Assembly: GCA_002269645.1 (NCBI GenBank)
Contig: NIVC01000023.1
Span: 248,001-312,000 of the forward strand
Direction: 5' to 3'
From: Macrostomum lignano
Lineage: Eukaryota
Length of the DNA: 64,000 nucleotides
Below, piece after piece: positions 36 through 60,772 of the stretch (the first letter of the stretch is position 1; each line of letters begins with the position of its first letter). The notes under the pieces are model-generated. The model saw nothing but the letters and a program-made list of their open reading frames with translations, was not told the DNA's origin and did no database searches. The position numbers and the translations under genes are program-made.

Positions 36-10031
<9,996 letters not shown>

Positions 10032-16186: not shown

Positions 16187-16629
16187 TGTTGTGATCCCCG
16201 TCCTCCGGAGCAACGCCTACAGCTTTAACCTGTCGGGAAGCTGCGACCCCCAGGTCCCCAGTCAGAGCTCCCGTCCCGCGCCCTAGGGAGAAGCAGAAAA
16301 AAGGACAGTAACTCACGAACACGAACTTACACACCGTAGCCGATGCAGTTCGCCGTGCACTCTTTATGGTAGATCGACGAGTCGTTATTAGCCAACGGAG
16401 GCGGACCAACGCGCGCAAGGGAGGAGTCTGCCCTCCAGACAGCGACTATATATTTTTCATTGGTCCTACGCGTACATGAATATAACTTAAGAACAAATGT
16501 ACGGTACAGCAGGGGAGGTGGGGCGGGGTGGCGTGATCGGCGTACGCATTGATTATTGATTGGAGGGGTGGGGCAGACTGGAGGGTTGGGGCGGGGCAGG
16601 AGGGCGAGAAAGGGCACGATTGCACAACA
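16187..16629 (-). repeat. 3' LTR of Gypsy-A
   Basis: Direct repeat of 22820-23262, preceded by the PPT on the minus strand. Confidence 0.97.
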
Positions 16630-22683: not shown

Positions 22684-22819
22684 GATCGCTTGCACAAAAC
22701 TAATTCTAACGCAAAACTAACTCCAACGCACTAAAGCACTAATTCAATAATGCACTACCCCAGACAACAGACAGAAATCTAACGGAAACCTTAACTGGAA
22801 TCCTGGTCACGGCACCAGT

Positions 22820-29860: not shown

Positions 29861-31904
29861 GGTCACGCTCAATCCTAGCTGGTTGATCGCTACTATTTAG
29901 CAATCGGACTAACACGTGATTCGTCGGGCTGACTCTATCCACTGACCTAGCTACAAAAAATTCTGAGTCTGTATTGAAAAGTTTAGAGGAGACTGTGCCA
30001 CTCAGGTTTGGCACAGTGTCAATCACTCGACTCGGCACTAGGGTTTCCGAGTGAGGTGGTAGCTCAGAGGTACAAGCAGCCAATACACGGCGTATGCGAA
30101 ACACCCCCTTATCGCCCTCGATCACAGGCACTGCTCCACCGGCCACGAGTACCTGGCCACAGGTGAAATCCAGCAGCACCTGGAAACCACGGAGGAAATC
30201 AATACCTAAGAGCGATTCAGCAGTGGATTCTTCGGTCACAAGGAAAACGTGATGTTTTTTAATCTTGCCTAGTTCCACTTCGCAACGTAAAGAGCCTAAA
30301 ATCTGGGTGGTGGACCCGTTGAAAGCCGTTGCCTTTGCGTCTTTGTGCGCTGGCGAAAAGGTGTTGTTGATCGGATCGGCTTCAACCAGTCTCTCCATGG
30401 CTTGCTTCCCCATCACGCTGGCGTTTGCCCCCGAGTCAAGGCAAGCCATGACTTGGTTGTCCCCGATTCGCAACTGGACAAAGAAGCTGGAATCCACCGC
30501 AGGCTCATCGGAACTAGTTTGGCCTAAATGCGTCTGATTGATCGATGGAATTGGCCTTACCCCACAAGCCTGATCGCGCTTCTTGCCCGAGTCGATTTTC
30601 CGATGGAATTGGACTCTTGTGCCCACGAGTTGGTGCTGGTCAGCCGAACGGTTCAAGGATTCAGACAGCTCACCACGGTGAAAGAAGAGCTGGTCGGGAA
30701 GTTGTTCTGATTGAATGAACCCGAAGTTCCCCTTCCAGGAAACAATTGAACCAACCTCCGACATTTGCTGGGCCTGATTATTTGGAGGATGACTCTTAGC
30801 AGCGGTCTGGTGGGCTATTGGAGGTGATGGTGTGATGGGACAGTCGGCAATGAAATGGTCCTCACCACCGCACCTGTAGCATTTCCTTGATCTGGACACC
30901 GCTGTACCAAATTGCTGAGTTGCCCCGTGATTTGGCGGTTGTTTATTCTTGTGCTTGTTATGTGGCTTGTGTTGGTTTGAATTTTGGATTGACTTGTTAG
31001 ATGATTGTGGTTGGTTGACAGCAACAGGCTTGGAAACTCCAGCCTGGTTCTGGAGTCGAAGGAGTCTCTCTAGCTCTTCTACTCTTGCCTCCAGAGACGC
31101 CTTCTCGGTTTCAAGGACACGGATATTCGCAGAGGAGTTTGGAGCGGGTTGCAGAAGTTGCTGAATACCAACGATCTCCTTGGCCTTCCTAACCAACTCG
31201 GCAGACGGGACAGTCTTAGCCTTTGCCCCACTAGACTCATCACTCACCCCTGCATCACTGCTCCAAAGCAAGAGTTTTTCTGCGAGCACCTTATCCCGAA
31301 TGCCATGGCACAGCCTCGCTCGTAATAAAGGTTCAGCTTCGGTTGATGAGAGGTCTGCTAACCGGGCATAAGATGCTAGCCTATCGTAAAACTCGGCAAT
31401 CGATTCGGTGCTGTTCTGGTGAGCGGCAATTAGTTCCATATAACTTTTCTCCCTAACGTTAGAGTCAGTGTAACGCGCTCTCATAGACTTCAGTGCCTCT
31501 TCACAGGTCTGATCCGTGAGATTGTTATTTAGAAAGTACTCCTGGCATTCTGGTGCCAGAAGGGACAGCAGGACTGCAGTCTGTTGAAAGTAAGGAACCC
31601 TATGAGCTTCAATGTACGCATTGAACTGAGCTTCCCAGGCATCAAACTTCGTGGTGCAAGTGAACAACGGTGGCGGCCGAAGCTTAATGCCTGAAGCTGT
31701 TTCCTTCTGTTGACTCTGGTAGAACGATTGAGAACGGGACTCTCTTGAGAATTGATTTTCTAACAACCGGTGCAGTGCGGCAATGGTACTAGCAAGAAGT
31801 GGCTCTGAGTCTGTAGTGTTGGTTGCCACAAACTTTCTTTCCTGAGCAGAAGCGTCTGGATTTGGAGAGCCAGCAGTGGCACTCCTGTCCTCGCGGTCAC
31901 TCAT
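29775..31904 (-). CDS. gag: Gag-CCHC-cold shock domain-aspartic protease polyprotein of Gypsy-B
   Basis: Likely ATG at 31904 (MSDRED); CYRCGGEDHFIADC (30840-30881); CSD WKGNFGFIQ...LFFH...VGTRVQF (30549-30758); CLDSGANAS and LLGIDFL protease motifs. Confidence 0.9.
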   Translation of the reverse strand: MSDREDRSATAGSPNPDASAQERKFVATNTTDSEPLLASTIAALHRLLENQFSRESRSQSFYQSQQKETASGIKLRPPPLFTCTTKFDAWEAQFNAYIEAHRVPYFQQTAVLLSLLAPECQEYFLNNNLTDQTCEEALKSMRARYTDSNVREKSYMELIAAHQNSTESIAEFYDRLASYARLADLSSTEAEPLLRARLCHGIRDKVLAEKLLLWSSDAGVSDESSGAKAKTVPSAELVRKAKEIVGIQQLLQPAPNSSANIRVLETEKASLEARVEELERLLRLQNQAGVSKPVAVNQPQSSNKSIQNSNQHKPHNKHKNKQPPNHGATQQFGTAVSRSRKCYRCGGEDHFIADCPITPSPPIAHQTAAKSHPPNNQAQQMSEVGSIVSWKGNFGFIQSEQLPDQLFFHRGELSESLNRSADQHQLVGTRVQFHRKIDSGKKRDQACGVRPIPSINQTHLGQTSSDEPAVDSSFFVQLRIGDNQVMACLDSGANASVMGKQAMERLVEADPINNTFSPAHKDAKATAFNGSTTQILGSLRCEVELGKIKKHHVFLVTEESTAESLLGIDFLRGFQVLLDFTCGQVLVAGGAVPVIEGDKGVFRIRRVLAACTSELPPHSETLVPSRVIDTVPNLSGTVSSKLFNTDSEFFVARSVDRVSPTNHVLVRLLNSSDQPARIERDQEIASFQELGHGEVVVPTAQLCLRGIFP

Positions 31905-32249
31905 GATCGGCTCGGCAACGAAGAGAAGGCAGCAAGAAAGAGAGAGAAAGCGGAAAACGAGAGAAGAACAAAAGCAAAAGCACACAGTGTCTGGCAGGAC
32001 CTAATGCCCAACCTAAAGAATCTAAACTAAAATCACGCAAACCAAATGCTAACCTGCCAGACAAGAGCCCTAAAAGACACACACAGAGGGATTCATACCG
32101 GTTTACGAAACGTGATTGCGGGCTTAGCTGGTATCGTCGCTCGGACAGTCGTAGATGGCCTCTGGCGGATGCAGACTGCGTCTCGGCCGATGTGCAGATC
32201 GCTCCGGCCGATGTAGATCGTCTTTGGGCCACTTGCAGATAGCAGATCG

Positions 32250-34306: not shown

Positions 34307-34548
34307 GACCTCAGTTCTCCCTATTCCAGACTCCAATTCTGGGTCTCTAAGACCTCAGTTCTCCCTATTCCAGACTCCTATTCTGGGTCTCTAAGACCTC
34401 AGTTCTCCCTATTCCAGACTCCTATTCTGGGTCTCTAAGACCTCAGTTCTCCCTATTCCAGACTCCTATTCTGGGTCTCTAAGACCTCAGTTCTCCCTAT
34501 TCCAGACTCCTATTCTGGGTCTCTAAGACCTCAGTTCTCCCTATTCTA
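34307..34548. repeat. 44-bp minisatellite, about 5.5 copies
   Basis: gacctcagttctccctattccagactcctattctgggtctctaa; period 44 (34351, 34395...). Confidence 0.92.
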
Positions 34549-36258
34549 GAAAAGAACTGACAATGTAAGTCTCATTAGTAGAGATTTCGTTTAGGCTAGA
34601 AGACTATAGCTAAGAAAGCATGCAGGTCGGTACTGAAAGTAAAGGTTGAGTTTATTTTGGGCTTAGTGGCGCTGTATATATAGAAATTTGGGAGGGGTAA
34701 AGTGCGCTGCTATTGGATAGTGCTCGTTACAACAAAGATTCGCAAAGATTTAAGCAAGCAAGAATTAAAACAAATGATAATATTCAAACAAAAACCTAGA
34801 AATTAGCTGATTGGTTAAGGTGGATAAAATATATACGAATCTAACTACTAATAGTAATATAGTTAGAAAAGACCCTGCCTCACATTGTAAAATCAATTCG
34901 AACACCCTAGATTTAAACTATGTTTGCAATAGTCTTCCAGTTCACTGCTGCGAGCAGTCAGAATCACAAAAAATAATTAACGCCACTATAAATTACAGCG
35001 TATATTTTCTTTAAAATATTTCTGATGAAAATACAAAAACTGAATAACCATTTTTGCGTTTCGTTAACACATAAACGCGATAACGCTTTCCTTAAGCAAC
35101 GTTCAAAGCGTTGTAAAGCGAACAGTTCAGAAGCGACAGTGTCACTAATAATTTTAATTTAATATAATAAGCCAAAAAATATATTGAATAAGAGACAAGT
35201 AAATATACATTTAAAATCAATCACGACCCTAAGTGTAAAATAACATTATATATAAAGCTTCCGCACTTTCCAAGAAATTGTGACAAATTGTGTAAACTGA
35301 ATCAAAATTCTCTGCTTCGAACCGAAAGAAACTAAACTTTCGGCTGGAGTCGACAGTAAAAAATCGATATTAAATAACACTCGGCGAAGAAAACTGGATA
35401 AATATAGGGATAAAAACGTTTTTAATGTTTTCAGTGGAACAATTATAGCATTAACATCAAGTTGCATTTTAGAATATTACGAGTACATGGAGAGTACTCA
35501 GAGTACTCTCCATATAATAGCTCTCAGGGAAATAACGAGCCCAAAAGTGTACAAAAAACGTCAAAAAACGTGAGCACTTTCTAATAAATTGTAACACTGA
35601 ATAAAAACTTGCTGATCATATTCCAATTAAATCTAACCGACGGTTTGAGTCAAGAGTAAAAAATTGTTATTAAATAAAATTCCATCACAGAAACTGGATA
35701 AATATAGCTCATATATAAATAAAAAGCGCTTGAAAAAATATCAACGTAAAAAAGTGATAGCATTATCGTCAATTTACGGTAGAATATTAATTACATCAAA
35801 AGTAATCAGAGCTCTCCAGTTAATAGCTCTCAGATAAACTACGATAGCCCTACAATCTATAAAAATGGTCACAGAATGATTTCATCGTCTTCTCCTGTTT
35901 CTGATGTTTTGTGATAATGTTTTTTTTTAAATTACCCAATAAAATTATCTGAGTCATTTAATAATTTAATAAACTTTAGCAAGACTACAAAGTTTACTTA
36001 CATGCTTAATTCGTGCGGGTTGCTGGCCTATCTACGAGTATAAGTGTAGGATTATAGAGTTGAGTGACGGTAAATGTTTAGGCAACGCTAGACTCTTTTT
36101 CTCAGACACATTCAATTTAATGGCCATAGCTAGTTCCAATTGGCGTTTTTCAATTTACCAATCTTACTTCTAACCAATAATTAGAAAACAAATTATGTGT
36201 AAAATTAAGGTCAGTTAGGCGTAAACACTTGGTACGAATTTGCTCTTGTTGTCCTTGT

Positions 36259-36621
36259 TTAGTTTTTCCTTTCGAAACGTCGCAGTCGAGCATTTCTGGC
36301 TTGCGTTGCTTGGAACCGAAGCTTGGCTTCTTTCCACAGCTTCTGCCTCTCGTCCTGCAGCTCACAGAAATCCTTCGCGTGCTTCGCTCCCCATCTGAAT
36401 GCGAAATTCAATTCAAGAAGTGAGGCGACCTTGTCGGTGTCGCTGTTGCTCTCCAGGAAGAGGAGCAGCCGTGCAATCTGCTCCTCGGAGAATCCGACTC
36501 GCTCATCGGCCACCTGTCTCTTGTGCCAGTAGAGTTTCACATTCCTGACGTCGGATAGGCTGCCAATGTTTTGGCCGAGATGCTTCCGCTTGGCGTCGAT
36601 CAGGGAGAGGCCGGATGTTTC
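36259..36621 (-). CDS. Exon 2 (terminal) of the same gene
   Basis: attccag|GAAACA after a 117-bp intron; 121 codons in frame with ORF 36259-36540; the same intron is present in the paralogue (52557-52674). Confidence 0.8.
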   Translation of the reverse strand, partial: ETSGLSLIDAKRKHLGQNIGSLSDVRNVKLYWHKRQVADERVGFSEEQIARLLLFLESNSDTDKVASLLELNFAFRWGAKHAKDFCELQDERQKLWKEAKLRFQATQARNARLRRFERKN

Positions 36622-36738
36622 CTGGAATCGTAGTTTACGTCAGTTGAAGCGTCATTCACTATATCAGAATAAAAATATTCAGCAAAGATAATCGCTACTT
36701 CACTTTAACAAGTTAATAATTGGTTTATCCAACCTTAC

Positions 36739-39700
36739 CTGCAGATTCCATAGGAAAATCAGAGTTTGGAACTTCAGCTCAGCACCGTCTTGATCCTTGA
36801 ACCTGTTAAGGTCAAGAACCAGTTTCACTGCCGTCTCGACAGCTTCCGAGCTGATGGCTGCTTTTGCATACTCGGTCTTGTCCTCAGTCCTCAGCTTCTT
36901 GTAGAACAGCCGCAGAAACTCGAGCGACAAATCGCCGTCGCTGTCGCAGCACCGGAAGTAGACAGCGCTGAGCTTGTTGTACAGCATGAGAGCGGCAGAC
37001 GCGCTGCGGTAGCATCCGGCAAAGGGTTCCTTGGTCTCCGTTTTGCTCGGCAAGCAGCGGGACAGCTGATCAATAGCGTGAGCGCGAACTCCTCCGATTT
37101 GCTGAGCAAAAATCGCGAGAGACAATTTTTTATATTCTTCCTCTTCACTGCTCAGCAGCAGCTCGGTAAGAACATGGGAGAATATGGTTGTTGGAGTGTC
37201 GCTGTCCTTGATGGCGCGTTTCAGCAAAGTGTCCAGAATCGGCTGAAGACAGTCGTTGCGCAGAAGGAGAAGCTGAAGCTCTCCGAACTGTTGCTTCTCA
37301 AGCAGTCGCTGCTCTTGTCGGCGCATTGTGTTCATGTCCTGAACTTTCTCTTCTTGTTGCTGCTGTTGTTTTTCACCTTCATTTCTCATCCGGTGTTCCT
37401 CATGCATTGCCTGAGCCGCCAGTCCAAGGACAGCTCGGTATGAGAGTAGGTCAAGAAAGTTGCGCAACTGGTAGACAATGAAGTCTCGGAGCTCCGGAAT
37501 ATTAATAATAATTTTTGACAGGTTCGTCTCCTTGAGTTGCAGCATGCAGTGAATTATGTGAGCCTGCTCCCCAAGACAGTCAGGGTCCGGGTCATTGCGA
37601 CACAATTTCTCCCTGAAGATCTGATAGGTATCTGGTGATTCGTCATTCCGAAGCTCCAGTATCTGTCGCGCCGTTCGCGTTCCAATCTCGTAGAAAAGGC
37701 GGTTGAAAAAGGCTTCTGTGATTCGCTGCCACCTCTTCTGAGTCTCCGTGCCCTTCATCCCGACAGCTTGCATTGTTAGGTGGTCCGGGTCGCATCGATT
37801 TTTTTTCTGAATCACTTCCTTATATTTTGTGATGAATGCATCTTCAGATACAGTTTCACCAGCGCGTTCAAATGCATTGAGCGCCAGCTTCTCCGCAAGC
37901 TCCTTGGCGTCGAAGGACACCTCGCACAAGAGTTTCTCAAAATTAACCTCGCTCTGAGGAAGTTGATATTTTCCAGTAAAGTCGTTGGCGTATGTGCTCA
38001 TGGGAAATCTAACATCATTCTCAACCATATTCCTCAGTGTGAGCAGTATGTAGCGGCGCATCGTGCTGGACTCTGGGAAAAATCGATTGGATGCCAGACA
38101 GCGGATCGCGATGCCCACCACACCGTGTCGCGCCAGAGACAGCTTGTAGCCAAAGTCGGCGGCTCGGGCTAAAAACATCCAAGCACCATCAAACATTGTG
38201 CAGACGGCTTCGTCAGTGAGGAGGCTCAGAGCAGAGGATTCATTGATCGCTAATCTGACAAAGAGGAACTCCAGCATCGGATCCTCGCACCAGATAAGAA
38301 CGGTGTAGCCTCTTAGACTGGTTTCCAAGCAGCGATTTTTCAGTTCCACCTCACTGGGATTAGAGATGCTGAGTCCCGTCCTGAGAATGACTTCCGCGAA
38401 TTTGAGGATGCATTGGAACGGAGTAGTCGGATCTCGCATGTCCTCGGCAGACTGCTGAAACTCTTCTGTCTTCGCGTGGCACCAATCCTGCGCTTCTTTT
38501 AACCTGCTGTGTAGGTCGTGATGCGGATTTTTTTTTGCAGAATACTTCTGGAGCTCCGTTACAAGTTTGTGGAATTGCGCTAAACGCTCTTCTACAGGAC
38601 TTTGTGGTTTTTGTTTCACATTGCGCTCGTTGGCGTGCTTGAGTAGCGTAGCTTGCAGCTCTTCGTTCTCACTCAGCTCGCTCCAGACCTGCGGCCAGTG
38701 GACAGTAAGTTCTGGCAGATATTCGTTGGGAAATGACGCCAAGTGAGCTTTCGATTGCTGAATGGCCTCCTTGATTGCCTCTCGCTGCTTTGAAAGTTTC
38801 TCATTTGTTTTGACTGAGATCCCACCTTGATCGGGATAATACTTCAGCGGGTGGAACTTTCTGACGGGAAAGAGCTGCATCAGCTTCTTGTCTTCTCCGA
38901 CATCATCCTGGCTAGAGTCCGATTCCACCGTAGTGGATTTGAGCAGAATGGTTTCATCCCAAGCGTCTGCGTAGAGCGCTATGAGTTTACTCTTCTTCGC
39001 GCGGAGCACCACGCTGAGCTGTGCTGGACCTCCACGTTGGAGAAACTTGTCAACATTGCAGGCGAGAAATTTCATCTTGGCGTAAATGAACTGCTTTGTG
39101 ATACTCTGCGAGTCCACTTCCAAAAGGCCTGGATCAATCGAGCAGTGCAGGATGAAGTGGGTGGATGCAGCAAAGCCGAAGAGGTCCAACAAGAAGTTTC
39201 CAGCTGGACAGAAGCCTTGCTCGAGTTTTTCCTCTTCTGTGCAGTCGCTGCTGTCCAGAGCACCGCTGATGTTGTCGATATTGTCACAAATGTCCAGAAA
39301 CACGACTTTCTCCTTCTCCAATACGTACATGACCACTCCGACCTTGAACAGGGTTGCAGCAATCTGGTTCTCCGTGAACTGATAGCCGAAGCCCATGATC
39401 TGGTCGTGGATAAATGTGGTGGTTCCACTCCGCATGGACCCACTGACCGCAATCACCTTGAGCCCTTGGGGCAGCTGCCACTCAGCTGGATCTCCCATTT
39501 TGTACTTTTGATCCTTTTCGTCCCACAGAATCAGAGGGACCACTCTGCACAGATTCAACGAAGTGGCGGAGTCGGCAGGTTTCTGAACTGAGAAATTTTC
39601 AACTGACGCCTCTTTGTGCGGATGAAATTTTTCGTCTGGATCGTTTTGAAACTGCTTAGGTGTGTCCTTTTCGTCCTTTTCTGTCTCTTGGTTATCAGAG

Positions 39701-42700
39701 TCAGCAGTGTTCATTCCAGAGGGTTGCAAGTCAGCATTTCGTGATTCTCCCCCGATGGCTCCAGAGCTCCGTTTGGCAGCATCACTTGCTGTCCTCGAAG
39801 TGGCAGTCTCGAATGTTTTAGGCGACGGCATGTGCGCCAACTGCTTGGCTTCGTCCGCTTCTCGTTTACGTTGCGCTTTGTACTGTAAGAGCTCCATGAT
39901 GGAGCTGAATATGCGAGGCGCCGTCTCTTTCTTGATAGGTTTCTGAGATTGCTTGCTTCTTACATGCACATTTAGAGCAGCTGGTGGTGGTGGAGGAGGC
40001 GGCGGTGCGAACGTGTCACAAGTTACTCCTTCGGGAATACGAGAGCGATCTGTATTTAAAGTGCCACTTTTGCTTGTGGCAAAAGATGCTGAGGCATGCA
40101 ATGAGGTGTCTGTGCCCAAAATGTAGGCGTTAAAACTTTCAGGATGCACATCACTACCAGTTTCCGACATTGGTACTGTTGATTGATGTTTCGGATCGCC
40201 GGTTTCTTTGAGCGATCCTCTATGCGGCTCGCCGGTTTCTTTAGATGAATCTGGATTTTCAGCACGACCAGTCTCCGGCATTGATAGCGGATTTAGTTTA
40301 GGTAGGGGTTGCAGTGGCGCATTTTCTTGCGTTGCGGGTTGCAGTGCTTGATGTCCTGAGAATGTGGGTTGCAGAGCTGGATGTCCTGAGGGTGTGGGTT
40401 GCAGAGCTGGATGTCCTGAGGGTGTGGGTTGCAGAGCTGGATGTCCTGAGGGTGTGGGTTGCAGTGCTGGATGTCCTGAGGGTGTGGGTTGCAGTGCTGG
40501 ATGTCCTGAGAATGTGGGTTGCAGAGCTGGATGTCCTGAGGGTGTGGGTTGCAGTGCTGGATGTCCTGAGGGTGTGGGTTGCAGAGCTGGATGTCCTGAG
40601 GGTGTGGGTTGCAGAGCTGGATGTCCTGAGGGTGTGGGTTGCAGAGCTGGATGTCCTGAGGGTGTGGGTTGCAGTGCTGGATGTCCTGAGAATGTGGGTT
40701 GCAGAGCTGGATGTCCTGAGGGTGTGGGTTGCAGAGCTGGATGTCCTGAGGGTGTGGGTTGCAGTGCTGGATGTCCTGAGGGTGTGGGTTGCAGTGCTGG
40801 ATGTCCTAAGGGTGTGGGTTGCAGTGCTGGATGTCCTGAGGGTGTGGGTTGCAGTGCTGGATGTCCTGAGAATGTGGGTTGCAGAGCTGGATGTCCTGAG
40901 GGTGTGGGTTGCAGTGCTGGATGTCCTGAGGGTGTGGGTTGCAGTGCTGGATGTCCTGAGGGTGTTGGTTGCAGTGCTGGATGTCCTGAGGGTGTTGGTT
41001 GCAGTGCTGGATGTCCTGAGGGTGTGGGTTGCAGTGCTGGATGTCCTGAGGGTGTGGGTTGCAGAGCTGGATGTCCTGAGGGTGTGGGTTGCAGTGCTGG
41101 ATGCCCTGAGGGTGTGGGTTGCAGTGCTGGATGTCCTGAGAATGTGGGTTGCAGAGCTGGATGTCCTGAGGGTGTGGGTTGCAGAGCTGGATGTCCTGAG
41201 GGTGTGGGTTGCAGTGCTGGATGTCCTGAGGGTGTGGGTTGCAGTGCTGGATGTCCTGAGGGTGTGGGTTGCAGTGCTGGATGTCCTAAGGGTGTGGGTT
41301 GCAGTGCTGGATGTCCTGAGGGTGTGGGTTGCAGTGCTGGATGTCCTGAGAATGTGGGTTGCAGAGCTGGATGTCTTGAGGGTGTGGGTTGCAGTGCTGG
41401 ATGTCCTGAGGGTGTGGGTTGCAGTGCTGGATGTCCTGAGGGTGTTGGTTGCAGTGCTGGATGTCCTGAGGGTGTGGGTTGCAGTGCTGGATGTCCTGAG
41501 GGTGTGGGTTGCAGTGCTGGATGTCCTGAGGGTGTGGGTTGCAGTGCTGGATGTCCTAAGGGTGTGGGTTGCAGTGCTGGATGTCCTGAGGGTGTGGGTT
41601 GCAGTGCTGGATGTCCTAAGGGTGTGGGTTGCAGTGCTGGATGTCCTGAGGGTGTGGGTTGCAGTGCTGGATGTCCTGAGAATGTGGGTTGCAGAGCTGG
41701 ATGTCCTGAGGGTGTGGGTTGCAGTGCTGGATGTCCTGAGGGTGTGGGTTGCAGTGCTGGATGTCCTGAGGGTGTTGGTTGCAGTGCTGGATGTCCTGAG
41801 GGTGTGGGTTGCAGTGCTGGATGTCCTGAGGGTGTGGGTTGCAGAGCTGGATGTCCTGAGGGTGTGGGTTGCAGTGCTGGATGTCCTAAGGGTGTGGGTT
41901 GCAGTGCTGGATGTCCTGAGGGTGTGGGTTGCAGAGCTGGATGTCCTGAGGGTGTGGGTTGCAGTGCTGGATGTCCTGAGGGTGTGGGTTGCAGTGCTGG
42001 ATGTCCTGAGGGTGTGGGTTGCAGTGCTGGATGTCCTGAGGGTGTGGGTTGCAGTGCTGGATGTCCTGAGAATGTGGGTTGCAGTGCTGGATGTCCTAAG
42101 GGTGTGGGTTGCAGTGCTGGATGTCCTGAGGGTGTGGGTTGCAGTGCTGGATGTCCTGAGGGTGTGGGTTGTAGTGGCGGATATTTTGGCGTTGGGGGTG
42201 TCGGTGGCGGATTTCCTGGTGGCGATGAAGTGTCTGTTGCAAGAAATTTTGAACGGAGAAGGTGATCAGTGTGAATATTTTGTTGTTGCCGTGCTGCTGA
42301 AGTGGTACCCTCCCCAGCCATATCCGTCTGTTTGATTGCATCCGCTTTGCCATTGTTGGCATCTTTCGGTACTGCTTCTTTATTATCCAGTTGTTTATTT
42401 TCTTGAGTCGCTTTCGCCGTTGCCGATCTGGACTGTTTGTTTGACTTTTGTGTGCTTTCTTGTTTCTGGGTTGATGTTTCTCGTTTATTTTCTGGAGCAG
42501 TCTTTGCCGTTGCCGATCTGGACTGTTTGTTTGACTTTTGTGTGCTTTCTTGTTTCTGGGTTGATGTTTCTCGTTTATTTTCTGGAGCAGTCTTTGCCGT
42601 TGCCGATCTGGACTGTTTGTTTGACTTTTGTGTGCTTTCTTGTTTCTGGGTTGATGTTTCTCGTTTATTTTCTGGAGTCTTCTCTGCTGCTACATCCTGC

Positions 42701-43485
42701 TTTTTTCCATCGGTGGTGTGGTTATCTTTTGAGGCTTCCGGATTACCCTCTTTGACCAACTCACAGGGCTGTTGCTGCTGTCTACTGGCCCGCAAATACC
42801 GGGCTCCAGTGATGGCCAGATCGCCTGCCATTGAGCAAAGAAGAAGAGATTGATCTATTTCACCGGTGAACGCCAACTGTCCAACGATATTTGATGCAGC
42901 GTGAGAAAAGAGTTCCGGGACGCTTGAGCTTAACCATCGGATTGCAGCAGCTGTGCCGCCCATTTGATTCAGCACAATGCTTTCAAGACGATCAGTGATA
43001 AATCGCTGGATTTGCGGTCCAATTTCTGGATGTTCGAGAGCGACAGGAACGATAGAAGCGAGGGCAGACGAGAAGACAGCGCGAAGAAGGTTTTCGTGCC
43101 AGGCCATGCCTCGCGCGAGATTTATAACAGCGTTAGCAATGGCACCTGTGATAGCACCTGCTGCACCCCGTATCAATACATTCGTAGCAAAGGCGCTGAT
43201 ACCCCATGCTTCCAACGCAGGAGTCAAACTGACAGTCGCAGCAGAGGCAGCAATAGAAAAAAGACCACTGACTAAACCGATCGCGGCACCTACGCCAACC
43301 TCCTTCCAGAACTGTTTCCAATCCAGATTCCTCCAAGCGCCGTAGAGAGCAGTTACGCCCGCACTGGTCAGTCCAGAGATGATGACGCTGACAGGTAATA
43401 TAACGGGCACAAAAATTGTCAATGCAGCCGCCGCCAGAAGACAGGCTGCGCCGAACAGAAATTTAAAAAATCGTCCCCAGCTCAT
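36739..43485 (-). CDS. Exon 1 (6.75 kb) of a large orphan-like protein: hydrophobic Gly/Ala N-terminus, Q/K/S repeat, Pro-rich repeat, degenerate GBP/atlastin-like domain, helical region
   Basis: 2301-aa ORF; likely start MSWGRFF (ATG at 43485); donor CTGCAG|gtaagg at 36739; conserved in the paralogue. Confidence 0.85.
40335..42172 (-). repeat. Coding 30-bp tandem repeat, about 61 x HPALQPTPSG
   Basis: ggatgtcctgagggtgtgggttgcagtgct on the + strand; variants TFSG, TPLG. Confidence 0.97.
42400..42690 (-). repeat. Coding 90-bp repeat x about 3 (TAPENKRETSTQKQESTQKSNKQSRSATAK)
   Basis: Period 90 (42421, 42511, 42601). Confidence 0.95.
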
Positions 43486-43802
43486 CTTTAGTTTTATGCT
43501 CTGCAATGTTTTGTGTAAAATTGTTCTCTTCGTTACGTGGCTACGAAATTTGGTTGGGTGCAAGGTGCACGAGATAATAGTAGATTGTGTATATGGTTTT
43601 GTCATAAAAATGATTCATTTTTGTCAACCGTAGTAAAAAAATTTTATGTCTTCCTCCAAAACGATATACGTAAGTACACGAGTGCTTCACGAATTTAAAA
43701 TATTTTTCGTAGTCGTACGCAATATTTTCGAAGCGTTAAATAATAAGCATAAGAGCGTCAGACAAGATGACGCAGTAGCTAGGCTATTGCTGTGAACTTT
43801 TT

Positions 43803-45622
43803 ATCAAAATATCTAAGTAGTAGGCAAGACAGGACTTCTGGTGCAAAATTGTCAAAAAATGGCCTTTCCCCCTTAGATCAACATCTACTAAAATCTATTG
43901 ACACACAATGCGCTTACATCTAAAATCAGCTATCACAATACAATACCTACTGTTGTGTAGCCAAGGCTTGAAGTTTCCAGTTGAGTTGAACAGTAAAGTG
44001 CTAGGTGCGCACAGTTGCTTTATTTATATTTTTGTTATTCAAGAAAAACTAAATGATCGATATTTTAACTACACTAGAAAAACTGCACGATCGATAAATT
44101 AAAGAGCTAGAGACATCACGTGATTAATAATACATTAGACAGATAATTTATCAACTACTCTAATTAAAGTGGCAGTATAAGTAAAAGACAATAGCAATAT
44201 AGTTAGCATTTACGTTATAGTAGAAATATTAGCGTAACAGTTTTCAATCATAAGTTTGAACACAACACCTACAACTGTTCATCTGAGGGGAGAAGGTGCA
44301 AAACAACGGCCTCTTTTAAAAATTATATAGCTTAAAACATTCGCATCTCAAGACCAACTCTCAAGACCAACTGGTCATTCCAACTGGTCTGGTCGCATTG
44401 CTGGTCTCGGCTACAGAGAAAAATCTCTGTCCCTCCCTATGCACACTGGTTGCCTTTCTGCGCACCATGCTTCTGTCACTAGACTATTTTTAACACAGGA
44501 CAGAGTTCAGCATCACATTCTCTCGATCACAATTGATAACGCGAACTCTTCACTATTAAAATCCAATCCATCTTCATCTTCTGTTTGACAGTTAAAATAC
44601 TTGTTTATGAAGAAAAAATACTTATTAATTGTTAACAAGAGATTCGAGAGATTGTCTCGAGCTTCTTCTGTTGCTTCTTGCTGAAGGAGCTCATCATAGA
44701 ATGCGTCAAGCAGCTTCACGCACTCTTCGTGTGCTGCAGTGGCTGCATCGCACGCTTGCTGGATCGTTCCATGATCGGTGTCACTTTGTAGCAACAGTAC
44801 AAGACGCTTTCGACCGGAATATTCAGCCTTCTCGTGGTTTCTTCTGTTGTTACACGAAATTTTGATTTGTAGGTTGCGAGTGCCCCGCCTGTTTTTTTCT
44901 TCGCCAGACTCCCCAGAGCTTTTATATCGGCGATGAAAAAATTCAGCGTTTCAAATTGGTGGTGCATACCCACCTCGTCATCTTCCACATCGGCCGTGCA
45001 CAACACTCTGGCTATTTTTTTAACTACTTTTTTTAAACAGTCAGTTTTTTAGCTGACCGTTAAGCTTTGGAGGCCAATATCATATCTATTAGCGCGAGAA
45101 TTAGAGCGAGGTGAGGTGAGGCGAGGCTAGATTGGTTGTGTATACGCTCGTATATCTTTGGTCTCTCTCTGCCTGGCAAGTCCACGATATTTCCACGGCA
45201 ATCCTGTGGAATTTTACCGGTTGAACATGGAACTTCTCTTTGATAGGCAAACCCATGGAATTGCCGTGGAAATATCGTGAATTAACCTTCTGAATATGGA
45301 ACTTCTCTAGGCAAACCCATGGACTTCCAGTGGAAATAACGTGAATTAACCGTCTGAATATGGAGCTCTCTCTGCTAGGCAAACCCATGGAATAGTCGTG
45401 GAAATATCGTGAATTAACCGTCAAACAGCGTACCTAAAACTGTAAACGTTACACCTCTTAGATGAACAGTTGTAGGTATTGCATTGTGATAGCTGATTTT
45501 AGATGTAAGCACATTGTGTGTCAATAGATTTTAATAGATGTTAATCTAAGGGGAAAGGCTATTTTTTGACATTTTTGCACCAGAACTCCTCTCTTGCCTA
45601 GCTACTACTTATATCTTTGATC
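43803..45622. mobile_element. Foldback/MITE-like element with about 150-bp imperfect terminal inverted repeats
   Basis: 43803-43950 is the reverse complement of ~45472-45622 (roughly 90% by eye); acctacaactgttcatct at 44267 is also inverted at ~45460; internal ~63-bp sub-repeats at 45240-45420. Confidence 0.65.
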
Positions 45623-46682
45623 ATATATAATTTTAACAAAATTTTTAACTGGCTCTTTCTAATCAGACTTTGCGGTCGAGGGTAACTGTAATTTACGATC
45701 AATTGCAATATTACCATCATCATAAAACCAATGAATGGTGTCTAAGACTAATACAGAAAATTATGTAATTACCTTGATAAATTATTCCAAAATGGAGTAA
45801 CTGTTGTCTCTCGCTTAAAAATTGGTTAGAGGCACCAAGCACCATATAGAGTTCATAATTAGTAAGTAAGCTTCAACTTAAATTTATTCACTTTGTTTTT
45901 ATAGATACAAGCAAATTGCGTCTTTATAGACAGAATGAAATGGAGCTCCAAACAGAAGTTTTAATCATGAAGGAGGCAGGAATAAAGTTGCTGCCTAGCT
46001 TTTTATAGATGATGACACTTTTCTGTCCTTCTGTCGAATGGTGTACACTGGCTTTCTAAATTCGGTTTCTGTAGCTGCAGCAGGCTGTTATGATGAGTAG
46101 ACATTTTATGCGTTTAACTTGGGGGTTAGAAAATATATCAAGTACAACAGAGAGCCGTCTGGTAAAAAGCATATTATTTAATTTTCGTTTCTGGCCACCT
46201 CTAACTCCTTTTTTGCACTCATCGGATGAGGTATGAATTTGAATTTGAATTGAAATCAAATCAAATTCAAATTCAAAGGATGAGCAGGCTAACGAGTACC
46301 CGAGCACCAAAGAGCATGCGTCACCCTCGCGTTTGGTTGAAGTCTATATTCTGTGGTTGAAGTAGAGAAGTTCTATTTTTCAGTTTGTTCTGTTAGGTTT
46401 GGCTTGAAATAAGATACCATGCAAGTCAAAAGCTCCGATATAAAATAAGGATTGGAAGTGCGTGTTAGATTTTTAAATAAACTAAGTTTTGTCCTGTTCA
46501 TTAACTATTCTATTGTGAGCTATTAGTGTTTTAACCTCAATATTTCGCAGTGGCTCACATTTTTCAGCAGCCTTAAGCATAATGACTACAGTCGTCCGCT
46601 GATGCAGATTTTAAGTATACCTGCAAAAGATTTTCAAAGACAAGCATATGCTTACTAGCTGGCACCTGGTACGAGTTAATTC

Positions 46683-52109: not shown

Positions 52110-52405
52110 CGTCGGCTAATAATATGTATAATATTTTAAATATTATACATAATATATATATATAATATATATATTAAATATATTTATAATATAATATTAT
52201 TATTAATATTATTATAATATATATATATATATTATATATTATATATATAATATATATATATATATATTAAATATAATATAAATATAATTAAATATATATT
52301 AAATATTAAATATATAATATACATAATATATATATTAAATATTATACATAATATATTATACATAAATATTTTAAATAATTAAAATATTTAATATTTTAAT
52401 AATAC
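52110..52405. repeat. AT-only low-complexity run
   Basis: Almost purely A/T (TA/TAA/TATT). Confidence 0.9.
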
Positions 52406-55400
52406 GTGCAATCTGCTCATCGGAGAATCCGACTCGCTCATCGGCCACCTGTCTCTTGTGCCAGTAGAGCTTCACATTCCTGACGTCGGATAGGCTGCCA
52501 ATGTTTTGGCCGAGATGCTTCCGCTTGGCGTCGATCAGGGAGAGGCCGGATGTTTCCTGGAATCGTAGCTTACGTCAGTTGAAGCGTCATTCACTAAATC
52601 AGAATAAAAATATTCAGCAGAACTAATCGCTACTTCACTTTAACAAGTTTAATAATTGGTTTATCCAACCTTACCTGCAGATTCCATAGGAAAATCAGAG
52701 TTTGGAACTTCAGCTCAGCACCGTCTTGATCCGTGAACCTGTTAATGTCGAGAACCAGTTTCACTGCTGTCTCGACAGCTTCCGAGCTGATGGCTGCTTT
52801 TGCGTACTCGGTCTTGCCCTCGGTGCTCAGCTTCTTGTAGAACAGCCGCAGAAACTCGAGTGACAAATCGCCGTCGCTGTCGCAGCACCGGAAGTAGACA
52901 GCGCTGAGCTTGTTGTACAGCATGAGAGCGGCAGACGCGCTGCGGTAGCATCCGGCAAAGGGTTCCTTGGTCTCTGTTTCGCTCGGCAAGCAGCGGGACA
53001 GCTGATCAATAGCGTGAGCGCGAACTCCTCCAATTTGCTGAGCAAATATCGCGAGAGACAACTTTTTATATTCTTCCTCTTCACTGCTCAGCAGCAGCTC
53101 CGTAAGAACATGGGAGAATATGGTTGTTGGAGTGTCGCTGTCCTTGATGGCGCGTTTCAGCAAAGTGTCCAGAATCGGCTGAAGACAGTCGTTGCGCAGA
53201 AGGAGAAGCTGAAGCTCTCCGAACTGTTGCTTCTCAAGCAGTCGCTGCTCTTGTCGGCGCATTGTGTTCATGTCTTGAACTTTCTCTTCTGGTTGCTGCT
53301 GTTGTTTTTCACCTTCATTTCTAATCCGGTGTTCCTCATGCATCGCCCGAGCCGCCAGTCCAAGGACAGCTCGGTATGAGGGTAGGTCAACAAAGTTGCG
53401 CAACTGGTAGACAACGAAGTCTCGGAGCTTCTGAATATTAATAATAATTTTTGACAGGTTCGTCTCCTCGAGTTGCAGCATGCAGTGAATTATGCAAGCC
53501 TGTTGCCGAAGACAGTCAGGGTCCGGGTCATTGCGACACAATTTCTCCCTGAAGATCTGATAGGCATTTGGTGATTCGTCATTTCGAAGCTCCAGTATCT
53601 GTCGCGCCGTTCGCGTTCCAATCTCGAAGAAGAGGCGATTGAAAAAGGCTTCCGTGATTCGCTGCCACCTCTTTTGAGTGTCAGCATCCGTGTTCTTCAT
53701 TCTGACTGCTTGCGTCGTTAGGTGGTCCGGGTCGCATCGAAGTTTTTTCTGAATCACTTCTTTATATTTTTTGATGAATTCATCTTCAGATACAGTTTCA
53801 CCAGCGCGTTCAAAGGCATTGAGCGCCAGCTTCTCAGCAAGCTCCTTGGCGTCGAAGGACACCTCGCACAAGAGTTTCTCAAAATTAACCTCGCTCTGAG
53901 GAAGTTGATATTTTCCAGTAAAGTCGTTGGCGTATGTGCTCATGGGAAATCTAACATCATTCTCAACCATATTCCTCAGTGTGAGCAGTATGTAGCGGCG
54001 CATCGTGCTGGACTCTGGGAAAAATCGATTGGATGCCAGACAGCGGATCGCGATGCCCACCACACCGTGTCGCGCCAGAGACAGCTTGTAGCCAAAGTCG
54101 GCGGCTCGGGCTAAAAACATCCAAGCACCATCAAACATTGTGCAGACGGCTTCGTCAGTGAGGAGGCTCAGAGCAGAGGATTCATTGATCGCTAATCTGA
54201 CAAAGAGGAACTCCAGCATCGGATCCTCGCACCAGATAAGAACGGTGTAGCCTCTTAGACTGGCTTCCAAGCAGCGATTTTTCAGTTCCACCTCTCTGGG
54301 ATTAGAAATGCTGAGTCCCGTCCTGAGGATGACTTCCGCGAATTTGAGGATGCATTGGAACGGAGTGGTTGGATCTCGCATGTCCTCGGCAGACTGCTGA
54401 AACTCTTCTGTCTTCGCGTGGCACCAATCCTGCGCTTCTTTTAACCTGCTGTGTAGGTCGTGATGCGGATTTTTTTTTTGCAGAATACTTCTGGAGCTCC
54501 GTTACAAGTTCGTAGAATCGCGCTAAACGCTCTTCGACAGGACTTTGTGGTTTTTGTTTCACATTGCACTCGTTGGCGTACTTGAGTAGCGCAGCTTGCA
54601 GCTCTTCGTTCTCACTCAGCTCGCGCCAGACCTGCGGCCAGTGGACGGTGAGTTCTGGCAGATATTCATTGTGAAATGACGCTAAGTGAGCTTTAGATTG
54701 CTGAATGGCCTCCTTGATTGTCTCTCGCTGCTTTGAGAGTTTCTCATTTATGTGGATTGAGATCCCACCTTGATCAGGATAATACTTCAGCGGGTAGAAC
54801 CTTCTGACGGGAAAGAGCTGCATCAGCTTCTTGTCTTCTCCGACATCATCCTGGCTAGAGTCCGATTCCACCGTAGTGGATTTGAGCAGAATGGTTTCAT
54901 CCCAAACGTCTGCGTAGAGCGCTATGAGTTTACTCTTCTTCGCGCGGAGCACCACGCTGAGCTGTGCTGGACCTCCGCGTTGGAGAAACTTGTCAACATT
55001 GCACGCGAGAAATTTCATCTTGGCGTAAATGAACTGCTTTGTGATACTCTGAGAGTCCACTTCCAAAAGCTCTGGATCAATCGAGCAGTGCAGAATAAAG
55101 TGGGTGGATGCAGCAAAGCCAAAGAGGTCCAACAAGAAGTTTCCAGCTGGACAGAAGCCTTGCTCGAGTTTTTCCTCTTCTGTGCAGTCGCTGCTGTCCA
55201 GAGCACCGCTGATGTTGTCGATATTGTCACAAATGTCCAGAAACACGACTTTCTCCTTCTCCAATACGTACATGACCACTCCGACCTTAAACAGGGTGGC
55301 AGCGATCTGGTTCTCCGTGAACTGATAGCCGAAGCCTATGATCTGATCGTGAATAAATGTGGTGGCTCCACTCCGCATGGACCCACTGACCGCAATCACC

Positions 55401-56438
55401 TTGAGCCCTTGGGGCAGCTGCCACTCAGCTGGATCTCCCATTTTGTACTTTTGATCCTTTTCGTCCCACAGAATCAGAGGGACCACTCTGCACAGATTCA
55501 ATGAAGGGGCGGAGTCGGTAGGTTTCTGAACTGAGAAATTTTCAACTAACGCCTCTTTGTGCGGATGAAATTTTTCGTCTGGATCGTTTTGAAACTGCTT
55601 AGGTGTGTCCTTTTCGTCCTTTTCTGTCTCTTGGTTATCAGAGTCAGCAGTGTTCATTCCAGAGGGTTGCAAGTCAGCATTTCGTGATTCTCCCCCGATG
55701 GCTCCAGAGCTCCGGTTGGCAGCATCACTTGCTGTCCTCGAAGTGGCTGTCTCGAATGTTTTAGGCGACGGCATGTGCGCCAGCTGCTTGGCTTCGTCCG
55801 CTTCTCGTTTGCGTTGGGCCTTGTACTGTAAGAGCTCCATGGTGGAACTGAATATACAAGGCGCCCTCTCTTTCTTGGTAGTTTGCTGAGCTTGCTGGTT
55901 TCTTACATGCACAGCGGCTGGTGGCGGTGGAGGAGGCGGCGGTGAGAACGTATCACAAATCACTCCTTCGGGCATTCGAGAACGATTCTTATTCGAAGTG
56001 CCACTTTTGCTTGTAAAAGATGCTGAGAGATGCAATGAGGCGTCTGAGCCCAAAACGTTGGTGCTTAAACTTTCAGGATCTTCATGCTGAGCAGTCTCCG
56101 ACATTGGTGCCGTTGGTTGATTTTCCGGATCACCGGTCTCTTTGAGCAATTCTCTGAATAGGTCACCGCTCTGTTTAGGTGGCTCACCGATCTTTTTGGG
56201 TGGTTCTTTTGGTGGGTCATCGGTCTCTTCTGATGGCTCTTTTTGTGGATCATCAGTCTCTTTGAGCGGTTCTTCTGGTGTCTCACCGATCTCTCTAGGT
56301 GGTTCTTGGGGTTGCTCTCCAGTCTCTTTGGGTGGCCCACCAGACTCTTTAGGTGGCTCACCGGTCTTTTTGGGTGGCTCACCGGTCTCTTTGGGTGGCT
56401 CACCGGTCTCTTTGGGTCGCGTATCTCTTCGATCATGT
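52370..56438 (-). pseudogene. Truncated paralogue of the 36259-43485 gene (lacks N-terminus, frameshift at an A10 run, C-terminus lost)
   Basis: ORFs 54302-56149 and 52630-54381 align closely with copy 1; T10 at 54470-54479 versus T9 at 38528-38536; exon 2 homology stops at ~52405. Confidence 0.75.
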
Positions 56439-57899
56439 CTAAATTCAACAAAATTTTCTATCAGGCTCTTTCAGTCAGAATTTTGTAAGACTTGATACGT
56501 TTGCTACGAGCGTACTGTATATTACCATCATCATAAAACAAATTAATGGCGTCCATGCTTCGGACTAATGAAAAAATAGGTAAATACCTTGATAAACTGT
56601 TCCAAAATGGAGTAACTGTTCAATTCCCTCTCGCTTACATTAAAATTAGGTTAGAGGCACCAAGCACCTAATGTAGCTCAGAATTAGTAAGTAAGCTTCA
56701 ATTTCAATTAATCACTTTGTTTTTATAGCTACAAGGTATAAGCTAATTGCGTCTTTATAGACAGAATAAAATTGGGCTCCAAACAGAAACTTTAACCATG
56801 AAGGAGGCAGGACTTTAAGTTTCTGCTTTGTAGTTTATAGATGATGACACTTGTCTTTCCTTCTGTCGAATGGGGTACACTCGCTTTCTGCATTCTGTTT
56901 CTGTAGCTGCAGGCTGTCATGATGCCTAGACACTTAACGCGTATAACTGGGGCTTAGAAAATATATAAGTTATACAATAGGGGGCCTGGTAAGCCTATTT
57001 TTTAATTGTCTTGATTCTGGGCATCTCCAACTCCTTCATTGCACTCATCGCATAATGCGTCGCCCTCGCTTTGTCTTAGCCTCGCTTCGGTTCGGAGCAT
57101 TTAGCTAGTTTTTTTAACCAGAGTATTTTGTAGTGGCTCTTGTTTTTTCAGCAGCCCTATAAAGCATATTGAATACAGCCTTTAAGTAGATCCACAAAAG
57201 GCTTTCAAAGAGAAGCTTTCACAGTGCTTACTAGCTGGCACCTGGTTTGAATTCAAGACAGATGCGAAAAAAATATAATAAGACTTCTTAAATAACACAG
57301 AAAGGCAAAATAACCGAATCAAATTTATGACCAACCGGACTGTAATATCTGAGCGCTGTGCATTTTACTATTGCTTGCCAATACGAAACTGATCGTGAAT
57401 TCCGGAAATGGATGAGAGATTCATGAATGACATGAGATTATTATAATGGGGAGTCTACTCGAAAGTGGCTGCCAGACCACCAGAAGATCGAGGCGGTTGT
57501 TGAAAGAGCCCCGTTGACGTCAAAGTTGGAGCGGCTGCTTAATTCAGTGCACTCGCCAGGATGCTTCAAGCATGTTGAATAGTAATGGTGTCTGTACTGA
57601 GGCTCTGCAGCTAGACAGAGGGTCCAGCTTCAACCATCCTGCTTCATTGGCACCTTCATCTGGCGGGCTGAGCTATCCGAACGGGGGACTGCTTACTATA
57701 TGACGTTGATTGATGTGTGGCTGAGAACTCGAGTCTTCTTTAATAAATTCGATCCTGCATTTACTGTTGAAGGCCGATGGTTTGCATGTATTCTTTATTT
57801 GACTTTCTGATGCAACGACAAAAATCTCTGAAAAAAGAGATTTTTTTATTAAAACACCTTAAAAACACAACAAAACTGCTAAACATCAAAGAAGCGCAA

Positions 57900-60700: not shown

Positions 60701-60772
60701 AAAAGTAAGCGAATTTTAAAGGAGCCACTATAATGCTAAGGAAATTGTCGCACTAGCTACTTATTGTCCGGT

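Follow-up and report, generated by a model that had tools for sequence, protein, structure and literature searches.

A giant two-exon gene of Macrostomum lignano and its predicted place in an unnamed eukaryotic protein family with a hydrophobic head, a degenerate P-loop domain and a helical solenoid

What kind of protein is encoded by a minus-strand open reading frame (ORF) of 2,301 codons (36700..43605) is the question raised by the locus analysed here, a 64,000-nucleotide stretch of contig NIVC01000023.1 (assembly GCA_002269645.1) of the flatworm Macrostomum lignano, hereafter called the window. The initial annotation, made from the sequence alone, had described a giant two-exon gene of an architecture that could not be assigned to a known family, and had suggested an immunity, allorecognition or toxin/secretory effector, possibly of retroposed or horizontal origin. 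A frame that stays open for about 2,300 codons at 46-57% GC is not a product of chance. This is a genuine protein-coding gene of M. lignano, and both its gene model and the conservation of its architecture are very probable. Judged by sequence comparison, its product is a member of an unnamed, sparsely distributed eukaryotic family with representatives in Macrostomum, Plectus, Mesorhabditis, Pristionchus and Gigaspora. The positions of all features in the window are compiled in Table 1; residues are numbered in the spliced product if not stated differently.

That a single protein is encoded by the giant ORF is best supported by the order of segments that it shares with distant relatives. In an exhaustive HMMER search with ORF residues 1340-2301 against 1.84 billion representatives, including prokaryotic and metagenomic proteins, 10 matches were obtained at E-values (E) up to 0.001, two of them M. 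lignano representatives. The others are nematode proteins from Mesorhabditis belari (P0006, E 1e-25), Plectus sambesii (P0007, E 2e-24; P0011, E 3e-12) and Pristionchus entomophagus (P0008, E 2e-18), a protein of the glomeromycotan fungus Gigaspora margarita that matches the helical solenoid (P0012, E 6e-8), and three metagenome fragments (P0009, P0010 and P0013). The identity to the distant relatives is 21-30%, and 41-42% for two short fragments, while word-indexed searches, including those with the family alignment, returned only M. lignano proteins (P0001-P0005). In P0006, P0007 and P0011 a head is followed by 400-650 mostly Pro/Gln/Ala/Thr-rich residues and then by the same P-loop and helical regions; the order of head, spacer, P-loop domain and solenoid is therefore considered ancestral, and the ORF a single protein. 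The nematode loci span about 9 kb for 1,202-1,650 aa and yield exon-sized pieces in tblastn, as ordinary interrupted genes do. No Pfam, NCBIfam or PDB sequence match to any part of the M. lignano protein was found, and whole-length homology to a characterised family was looked for with the same outcome, in agreement with the proposal that the architecture belongs to no known family.

The spliced product of the gene comprises 2,369 residues, and its coding sequence (CDS) of 7.1 kb is intact. The initial annotation had expected about 2,370 residues with 95% of them in one 6.75-kb exon and a succession of head, Q/K/S repeats, Pro-rich tandem, poly-Pro, P-loop domain and helical region; the exon structure agrees closely, and all of the segments were found in the listed order. 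On sequence grounds the start codon was placed at Met 43485, in preference to the upstream ATG at 43605, because an invariant Trp-3 aligns with the N-termini of the relatives, of which Plectus P0007 starts with MGW. The splice junction is supported by homology, as WNLQ/ETSGLSLID aligns with nematode NLALTSDITNGD, NVASTSGIDYGD and NASSTCGISFGT. The NCBI model BOX15_Mlig012994g1 (P0001, 1,301 aa), located on the same contig and assembly, represents the C-terminal 55% of the protein and is 100% identical over the last 1,301 aa. It begins at window position 40281 (aa 1069), directly past the 1.8-kb decapeptide array, and does not include the first 1,068 codons, so that the head, the two repeat arrays and a portion of the spacer are missing from it. 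The Mlig_3_7 annotation was derived from RNA sequencing (RNA-seq)-guided transcript assemblies (PMC5730564), and the presence of a spliced model in it therefore indicates that at least the 3′ 4 kb are transcribed; transcripts assembled from short reads can be expected to be interrupted at the decapeptide array, just past which the public model starts. The name Mlig012994 was found neither in the literature nor in the supplements of the genome paper (PMC5730564), and no record of the M. lignano relative P0002 or of the full unspliced ORF was found in public assemblies. Names such as CAP-Gly, ANK_REP_REGION and TPR_REGION, which UniProt attaches to related M. lignano models, have no Pfam support on the protein of this gene.

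The N-terminal head is composed of 17% Ala, 12% Leu and 9% Gly and contains four stretches with a mean Kyte-Doolittle hydropathy above 1.5. It aligns with the Gly/Ala-rich hydrophobic N-termini of P0006, P0007 and P0011 at 22-23% identity with 16 invariant columns, among them W3, G43, W56, F59, G66, G70, N122, G126 and T207-G208, and an independent tblastn search with the P0006 head against the window gave E 3e-5 at 43320-43033. From the alignment of the four heads AlphaFold2 predicted a nine-helix bundle with a mean predicted local distance difference test (pLDDT) of 71 and a predicted template modelling score (pTM) of 0.65. No significant match was obtained in Pfam, NCBIfam or PDB sequences by single-sequence and profile searches, and the head query gave zero matches in the word-indexed protein search. 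The data support the view of the head as a conserved hydrophobic domain that is predicted to be all-helical.

The head is joined to the folded C-terminal part by a spacer of about 1,060 aa, for which the description as a real low-complexity linker is likewise supported. It contains two N-x-S/T sequons, and the C-terminal 1,069 aa contain 23 Cys residues. The 61 units of the decapeptide array comprise only five peptide variants and eight DNA variants, and since so few DNA variants are present the expansion is regarded as recent. P0002 is devoid of the arrays and the nematode spacers are non-repetitive; on this basis it is proposed that the length of the spacer is free to vary across the family. 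By eye, a short charged helix, IFSSIMELLQYKAQRKREADEAKQL, was noticed upstream of the P-loop domain at aa 1192-1215 (about 39840-39912). Counterparts in four nematode proteins (e.g. IDEIRFINEEKQRADRERERQ), seen in the same way, mark a conserved island in the otherwise unalignable spacer.

For the C-terminal 1,060 aa an AlphaFold2 model was generated from a 13-sequence alignment (mean pLDDT 60, pTM 0.49), in which the alpha/beta core of the P-loop domain reaches a pLDDT of about 70-87. When this model was compared with PDB by Foldseek, RNF112 was the first match (9jjx_B, E 4.5e-4, probability 1.0) and appeared again in sixth place, and the G fold of SMG8-SMG9 (probability 1.0) had the best target-normalised template modelling (TM)-score of 0.54; among the top 50 PDB matches no other P-loop class and no STAND protein was recognised. 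In BFVD a giant-virus 'Atlastin-2-like' protein came first (E 9.8e-5). The best matches in two independent structure libraries are thus atlastin/GBP/RNF112-type G domains, as predicted for the fold by the initial annotation, which had proposed a dynamin-superfamily-like domain. At the sequence level, hhalign brought the family alignment of the domain into register with GBP1 at E 0.009 and a probability of 4%, and with GBP1 plus ATL1 at E 0.012, the GBP1 and atlastin-1 query sequences each being 100% identical to the PDB chains. The register covers the beta-hairpin, the P-loop, GIWMW of GBP1 against GVVMY and LLDTEG of GBP1 against FLDICD. No Pfam GBP or dynamin match to the protein or its segments was found even at E up to 10, and in PDB sequence and profile searches no GBP, atlastin or RNF112 was recovered, the profile of the domain giving generic Walker-A matches at E above 0.2. 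An atlastin/GBP-like fold is therefore moderately supported by the predicted structure, and membership in the atlastin/GBP/RNF112 family is not established.

The nucleotide-binding motifs of this domain are degenerate, the G1 Lys, the G3 Gly and the G4 Asp all being missing; a degenerate P-loop domain had been noted in the initial annotation. In the family alignment the Walker-A Lys is replaced by Arg (G-x3-S-G-R-T-T) in the four nematode proteins and both fungal-type fragments and by Thr in M. lignano. The Gly of DxxG (G3) is absent, M. lignano having L-D-I-C-D and the family consensus being L-D-C-C-D. A conserved L-R past the fifth strand is not accompanied by the Asp of the RD motif (VLRA, VLRY, LLRG, VLRP), the assignment of G4 being one by position only. 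The catalytic motifs are lost across the family, and the domain may be at best a nucleotide binder and in M. lignano perhaps not even that. A GBP-like P-loop at the sequence level (GxxRxGKS) was considered and set aside, as it applies to M. lignano only and the G-x3-SGRTT of the family is nearer to a generic GSGKT Walker A.

C-terminal to this domain about 750 aa are predicted to be almost wholly helical. The first helical block (model residues 320-520) has a pLDDT of 80-91, and large parts of the model are below 50. Foldseek matches of this region are transportin, a condensin HEAT subunit, beta-catenin, importin-alpha, Vac8 and SPAG6-type proteins (E 6e-4 to 3e-2), and apart from RNF112 and SMG8-SMG9 all recognised top PDB matches are ARM/HEAT solenoids. 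The helical, ARM-like region of the initial annotation is in line with these fold matches; no Pfam ARM/HEAT repeats were found in the protein. The tail encoded by exon 2 has a weak Pfam UBA_6 match (E 0.085, under the cut-off) and a pLDDT below 50. The relative P0011 of Plectus ends in a UBX domain (Pfam, 24.4 bits against a cut-off of 21, E 3.5e-5), and the C-termini of P0007 and P0008 align with it. UBX (PF00789) is absent from the M. lignano protein and from the downstream window DNA. By eye, the nematode UBX seemed to be preceded by a UAS or PUB module; this had no tool support and is not claimed.

A second, partial copy of the gene, copy B, lies on the same strand of the window. It is 95% identical to the intact gene A at the nucleotide level over 3,760 nt (36470..40221, blastn), and UniProt entry A0A1I8GXE0 (P0003) corresponds to it. 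Gene A positions 40491..45610, which comprise the head, the two arrays and some 2 kb of upstream sequence, have no counterpart in it. Its reading frame is shifted by a 1-bp insertion at 54479, possibly an error of the long-read assembly, and an AT-rich repeat (52128-52404) interrupts its exon 2. Where gene A ends its decapeptide array, copy B opens with degenerate PKETGEPP-type octapeptide repeats (56100-56470, minus strand). Beyond 56422 copy B resembles the far-upstream region of gene A (45610-45994) at 77% identity. These relations suggest, as far as they can be read from the DNA, a 5.1-kb deletion or a different recombination history. The tandem duplication of the initial annotation therefore holds in that a second copy exists, and needs amendment in that this copy is partial, frameshifted and broken in its last exon. 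Between the two copies the rate of synonymous substitution (Ks) is 0.096 and the ratio of non-synonymous to synonymous substitution rates (Ka/Ks) is 0.36 overall, 0.19 in the P-loop domain and 0.34-0.44 in the solenoid (range 0.19-0.52); past purifying selection therefore follows from the overall value and that of the P-loop domain. Duplication is usual in the M. lignano genome (PMC5730564), and 'duplication and turnover', although true of the locus, is weak evidence for function in this genome.

Neither of the two origins that had been considered for the gene was upheld. A retroposed origin finds no support, as a canonical 117-nt spliceosomal intron is kept inside the CDS. Concerning horizontal origin, no prokaryotic sequence relative was found in the exhaustive search, in which only eukaryotic proteins or unassigned fragments matched, and the degenerate DNA pattern SGRT..H..GY..G..MYV gave zero matches in 185,579 prokaryote genomes (GTDB); the zero matches of this pattern in metagenomes are uninformative since fragment P0009 (JGI) was not recovered. 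Viral matches, namely giant-virus atlastin-like proteins, occur at the fold level only. The named sequence relatives are thus all eukaryotic, without bacterial or viral ones, the head having been searched by word index only. The metagenome fragments are probably glomeromycotan, because P0009 shares the pre-P-loop motif IYTTRNAIETFRSQSE with the Gigaspora locus; P0010 also shares the pre-P-loop motif. The spread over flatworm, nematodes and Glomeromycotina would imply massive loss or transfer between eukaryotes, between which ten sequences cannot decide.

Some gene models of the relatives deserve mention. At the Gigaspora locus (L003, 4641-5345 and 10001-12853) the annotated protein of 753 aa holds the helical part only and seems truncated, and beyond runs of N the same strand carries a P-loop segment (GV.MYVL...LDCCD) at a distance of 4.8 kb upstream. 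The next called gene after P0006 (L002 19187-23551) seems to continue the P0006 gene, as judged by tblastn with P0008 aa 998-1098. Within P0006, G-C-A-E and P-P-C-D-S-C with about 40 residues between them were seen by eye at aa 418-465, between head and P-loop, where Pfam gave no match. We take this motif to be the zinc-binding signature of cytidine-deaminase-fold enzymes, and it may represent a divergent toxin-type deaminase or a gene-model artefact.

The known systems closest to the protein include the atlastin/GBP/RNF112 branch of the dynamin superfamily (PDB 9jjx and 9jjv for RNF112, 1dg3 for GBP1, 3q5d for ATL1) and SMG8-SMG9 (5nkm). RNF112 is a dynamin-superfamily GTPase whose G domain resembles those of atlastins and GBP1 (PMC12012479). 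With this group the M. lignano protein shares the best fold matches and an order of elements that is in register (N-terminal beta-hairpin, P-loop strand, G-V-x-M-Y, h-h-L-D), and with atlastins and RNF112 also hydrophobic membrane segments and helices that follow the G domain. It differs from the group in that no significant sequence similarity is present, the G1 Lys, G3 Gly and G4 Asp are missing, and the membrane domain, much larger here, lies at the N-terminus and is set apart by 500-1,060 disordered residues. Moreover, the helical part is a predicted ARM/HEAT-like solenoid of 700-1,000 aa instead of a three-helix bundle or the GBP helical domain. SMG8-SMG9 uses a dynamin-like G fold as a non-canonical or degenerate nucleotide-binding scaffold and is alike in this fold; however, no sequence similarity to it was detected, and SMG8 and SMG9 have no such membrane head, spacer or solenoid. 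UBX-domain adaptors of p97/VCP include the membrane-anchored FAF2/UBXD8 and are comparable in the UBX end of Plectus P0011 and in the logic of a membrane anchor combined with a cytosolic adaptor, whereas the M. lignano protein has no UBX and the rest of the architecture is not shared. The fold matches to ARM/HEAT proteins (importins, beta-catenin, Vac8, condensin HEAT subunits) extend over 500-1,000 columns; in contrast to these proteins no Pfam repeats are present here, and much of the region was modelled at low confidence.

Tentatively, the protein is read as a membrane-tethered pseudo-GTPase/solenoid scaffold on a long flexible spacer, a reading in which membrane insertion, cytosolic topology and the role as scaffold or adaptor are the parts that we infer. 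The head would embed the protein in an intracellular membrane. The spacer would act as a flexible, fast-evolving tether, lengthened recently in M. lignano by the arrays of 61 decapeptide units and three 30-aa units. On the cytosolic side the pseudo-GTPase and the solenoid would form a non-catalytic, or at most nucleotide-binding, scaffold for the capture of partner proteins. The UBX terminus of at least one Plectus paralogue would recruit p97/VCP, making the protein a p97 adaptor in some lineages, while the M. lignano protein would carry a short helical tail instead of a UBX module. UBX is a cytosolic or nuclear p97-binding module, and G domains and ARM/HEAT solenoids are likewise intracellular. 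Together with the 23 Cys residues and the presence of just two sequons, these modules are the reason why the bulk of the protein is placed in the cytosol and is not regarded as a secreted toxin or a mucin-like product.

Several observations weigh against this scaffold. The assignment of the G domain depends on a mediocre model and on weak sequence support, as given by the missing Pfam match and the hhalign probability of 4%. The head has no structural relative in PDB (Foldseek best E 0.35, generic helical membrane bundles only), and because of this the label 'anchor' is a reading of hydrophobicity only. Transcript support covers the part downstream of the arrays, where the public model starts, and the UBX domain is known from a single Plectus paralogue, the M. 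lignano gene having none. Finally, a mucin-like extracellular stalk is another possible reading of the tandem array rich in Pro, Thr and Ser.

The best-surviving alternative, possible and yet rather unlikely, is an NLR/GBP-like intracellular immune or conflict effector, in which the solenoid senses a non-self or danger ligand, the G-like domain is an oligomerisation switch and the head is an executioner that permeabilises membranes; it is an intracellular form of the immunity or allorecognition idea of the initial annotation. The order of a membrane-active head, an NTPase-like domain and helical repeats parallels that of fungal and animal NLR-type proteins, and the GBPs, which are the nearest fold relatives of the G domain, are membrane-acting immune effectors. 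The patchy distribution (10 matches among the 1.84 billion representatives), the fast-evolving spacer and the local variation in copy number and truncation would also fit, as would a weak nSTAND_NTPase5 match at the P-loop of P0011 (E 0.022, 15 bits against a cut-off of 34) and the CAE...PCxxC deaminase-like motif of the Mesorhabditis member. However, Pfam on the window protein and Foldseek gave no STAND, NACHT or NB-ARC signature, the head matches no pore-forming fold, and Ka/Ks stays under 1 in all parts, the solenoid showing no sign of diversifying selection. In addition, duplications are commonplace in this genome (PMC5730564), and the UBX end in Plectus suggests housekeeping p97 biology. 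The deaminase motif is unsupported by Pfam and may be an artefact of the gene model.

A related and somewhat less likely possibility is an unrecognised eukaryotic conflict or immunity system, in which the pseudo-GTPase, derived from the atlastin/GBP group, and a solenoid sensor would control a new membrane-permeabilising head and the deaminase-like insert of the Mesorhabditis member would be a swappable effector. The patchy presence of the family among inhabitants of soil and sediment, namely a flatworm, a few nematodes and arbuscular-mycorrhizal fungi, would then be due to rapid birth-and-death evolution or to transfer between eukaryotes.

Improbable is an active dynamin-like GTPase that tethers or fuses membranes as an analogue of atlastin or mitofusin with reversed topology. 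The best fold matches are indeed atlastin-type G domains, a hydrophobic membrane domain and a long tether are present, and M. lignano keeps an Arg (G-S-M-R-S-G) at the position of the internal arginine finger of GBP, atlastin and RNF112 (for the role in RNF112 see PMC12012479). Set against this, the P-loop Lys is missing in every member, D-x-C-D replaces DxxG, the RD-motif Asp is not conserved, and no Pfam GBP or dynamin match was obtained.

Even less probable is a secreted or surface product, such as a toxin, an adhesive or a mucin-like protein, with the head as signal-anchor and the Pro/Thr/Ser array as O-glycosylated stalk. This would account for the PT(P)S-rich tandem array of 610 aa next to a hydrophobic N-terminus, and tandem-repeat secreted proteins are common in flatworm glands. 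However, in place of a short signal peptide there is a conserved hydrophobic domain of several helices and about 240 aa, the folds of the G domain, the ARM/HEAT-like part and UBX are of intracellular types, and the arrays are dispensable in the family. A decaying or non-functional ORF, or a by-product of the neighbouring retrotransposons, is hardly credible and already close to refuted, as the position of the gene among long terminal repeat (LTR)-retrotransposon pol and gag ORFs, the truncated and frameshifted copy B and the partial public model stand against an intact 7.1-kb CDS, an architecture conserved between phyla, Ka/Ks values of 0.19-0.52 and no similarity to transposon proteins.

Returning to the membrane-tethered scaffold, the structural half of the initial interpretation (head, spacer, dynamin-like fold, ARM/HEAT arm) was retained, while its toxin or secretory part is disfavoured by the cytosolic-type folds and the UBX end of Plectus P0011, and the retroposed or horizontal origin found no support. 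The most fitting description of the protein is that of a variant related to the atlastin/GBP branch of the dynamin superfamily, for which an immune or conflict role is possible. The family is unannotated, with no Pfam model and with every member labelled hypothetical or uncharacterised. In it a new conserved, putative membrane domain is combined with a large solenoid and with a G domain of the atlastin/GBP type whose catalytic motifs are degenerate, and the dynamin superfamily would gain a divergent branch that is probably non-enzymatic. Should the conflict-system reading hold, the family would constitute a new animal and fungal immune architecture. For gene annotation, the public M. lignano model is short of 1,068 N-terminal residues including the membrane domain, and on weaker evidence the Gigaspora and Mesorhabditis models also appear truncated or split. 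Tractable entry points are offered by transgenesis and RNA interference (RNAi) in M. lignano and by Pristionchus genetics.

Table 1. Positions of the gene, its protein segments and neighbouring features in the window (repeat statistics from Tandem Repeats Finder, TRF; RT, reverse transcriptase)
Feature	Position	Strand	Remarks
Coding exon 1	36739..43485	-	6,747 nt, aa 1-2249, 94.9% of CDS; from Met of MSWGRFF to donor CAG/GTAAGG
Intron	36622..36738	-	117 nt, GT..AG; donor 36739/36738, acceptor TTCCAG/G 36622/36621; junction shared with NCBI model P0001
Coding exon 2	36259..36621	-	aa 2250-2369 and stop; helical tail
Hydrophobic Gly/Ala helical head	42766..43485	-	aa 1-240; likely membrane domain
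30-aa Q/K/S-rich repeat	42393..42677	-	3.2 copies of 90 bp; TRF 97% matches; three identical peptide copies, aa 271-358
PTPSGHPALQ decapeptide array	40339..42168	-	61 units, aa 440-1049; TRF period 30, 61.4 copies, 95% matches
Pro8 tract	39982..40005	-	aa 1161-1168, in non-repetitive part of spacer; also in related P0002-P0004
Alpha/beta P-loop-like domain	38686..39585	-	aa 1301-1600; predicted atlastin/GBP/RNF112-like fold, degenerate G motifs
Degenerate Walker-A/G1 GSMRSGTTT	39415..39441	-	aa 1349-1357; Lys replaced by Thr
Alpha-helical solenoid, ARM/HEAT-like	36739..38685	-	aa 1601-2249; all-helical in AlphaFold2 prediction
Copy B (partial second copy)	52405..56470	-	matches aa 999-2261 (ORF aa 1039-2301); tblastn 80-95% identity
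Integrase-like fragments	14379-15611	-	by eye
pol	17900-21859	-	1,319 aa (protease, RT, RNase H, integrase)
RT-RNase H-integrase ORF	26905-29703	-	follows gag-protease ORF
gag-protease ORF	29775-31985	-	
PNMA/gag-like ORF	61373-62413	+	with zinc knuckle

Apart from the gene and its partial copy, the window contains retrotransposon genes that flank the gene at 14379-22695 (minus strand), 26905-31985 (minus strand) and 61373-63199 (plus strand). On the plus strand at about 900-9000, ORF fragments were seen by eye that resemble the C-terminal channel region of a calcium channel of the IP3-receptor/ryanodine-receptor type and are distributed over many small exons, for example FFIMITTIGLNIIFGIIVDTFSQLRDKK...CFICS...FEHHVRSEHNMWAYIFF at 8490-8906; this is probably the other host gene with small exons mentioned in the initial annotation. 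Satellite-like arrays are located at 57912-60705 (122 units of 23 bp, just upstream of copy B), 4077-4418 (16 units of 21 bp), 9477-9888 (about 100 units of TTAG) and 34307-34550 (5.5 units of 44 bp), and at 52128-52404, where the AT-rich array that truncates the last exon of copy B has a unit of 65 bp.

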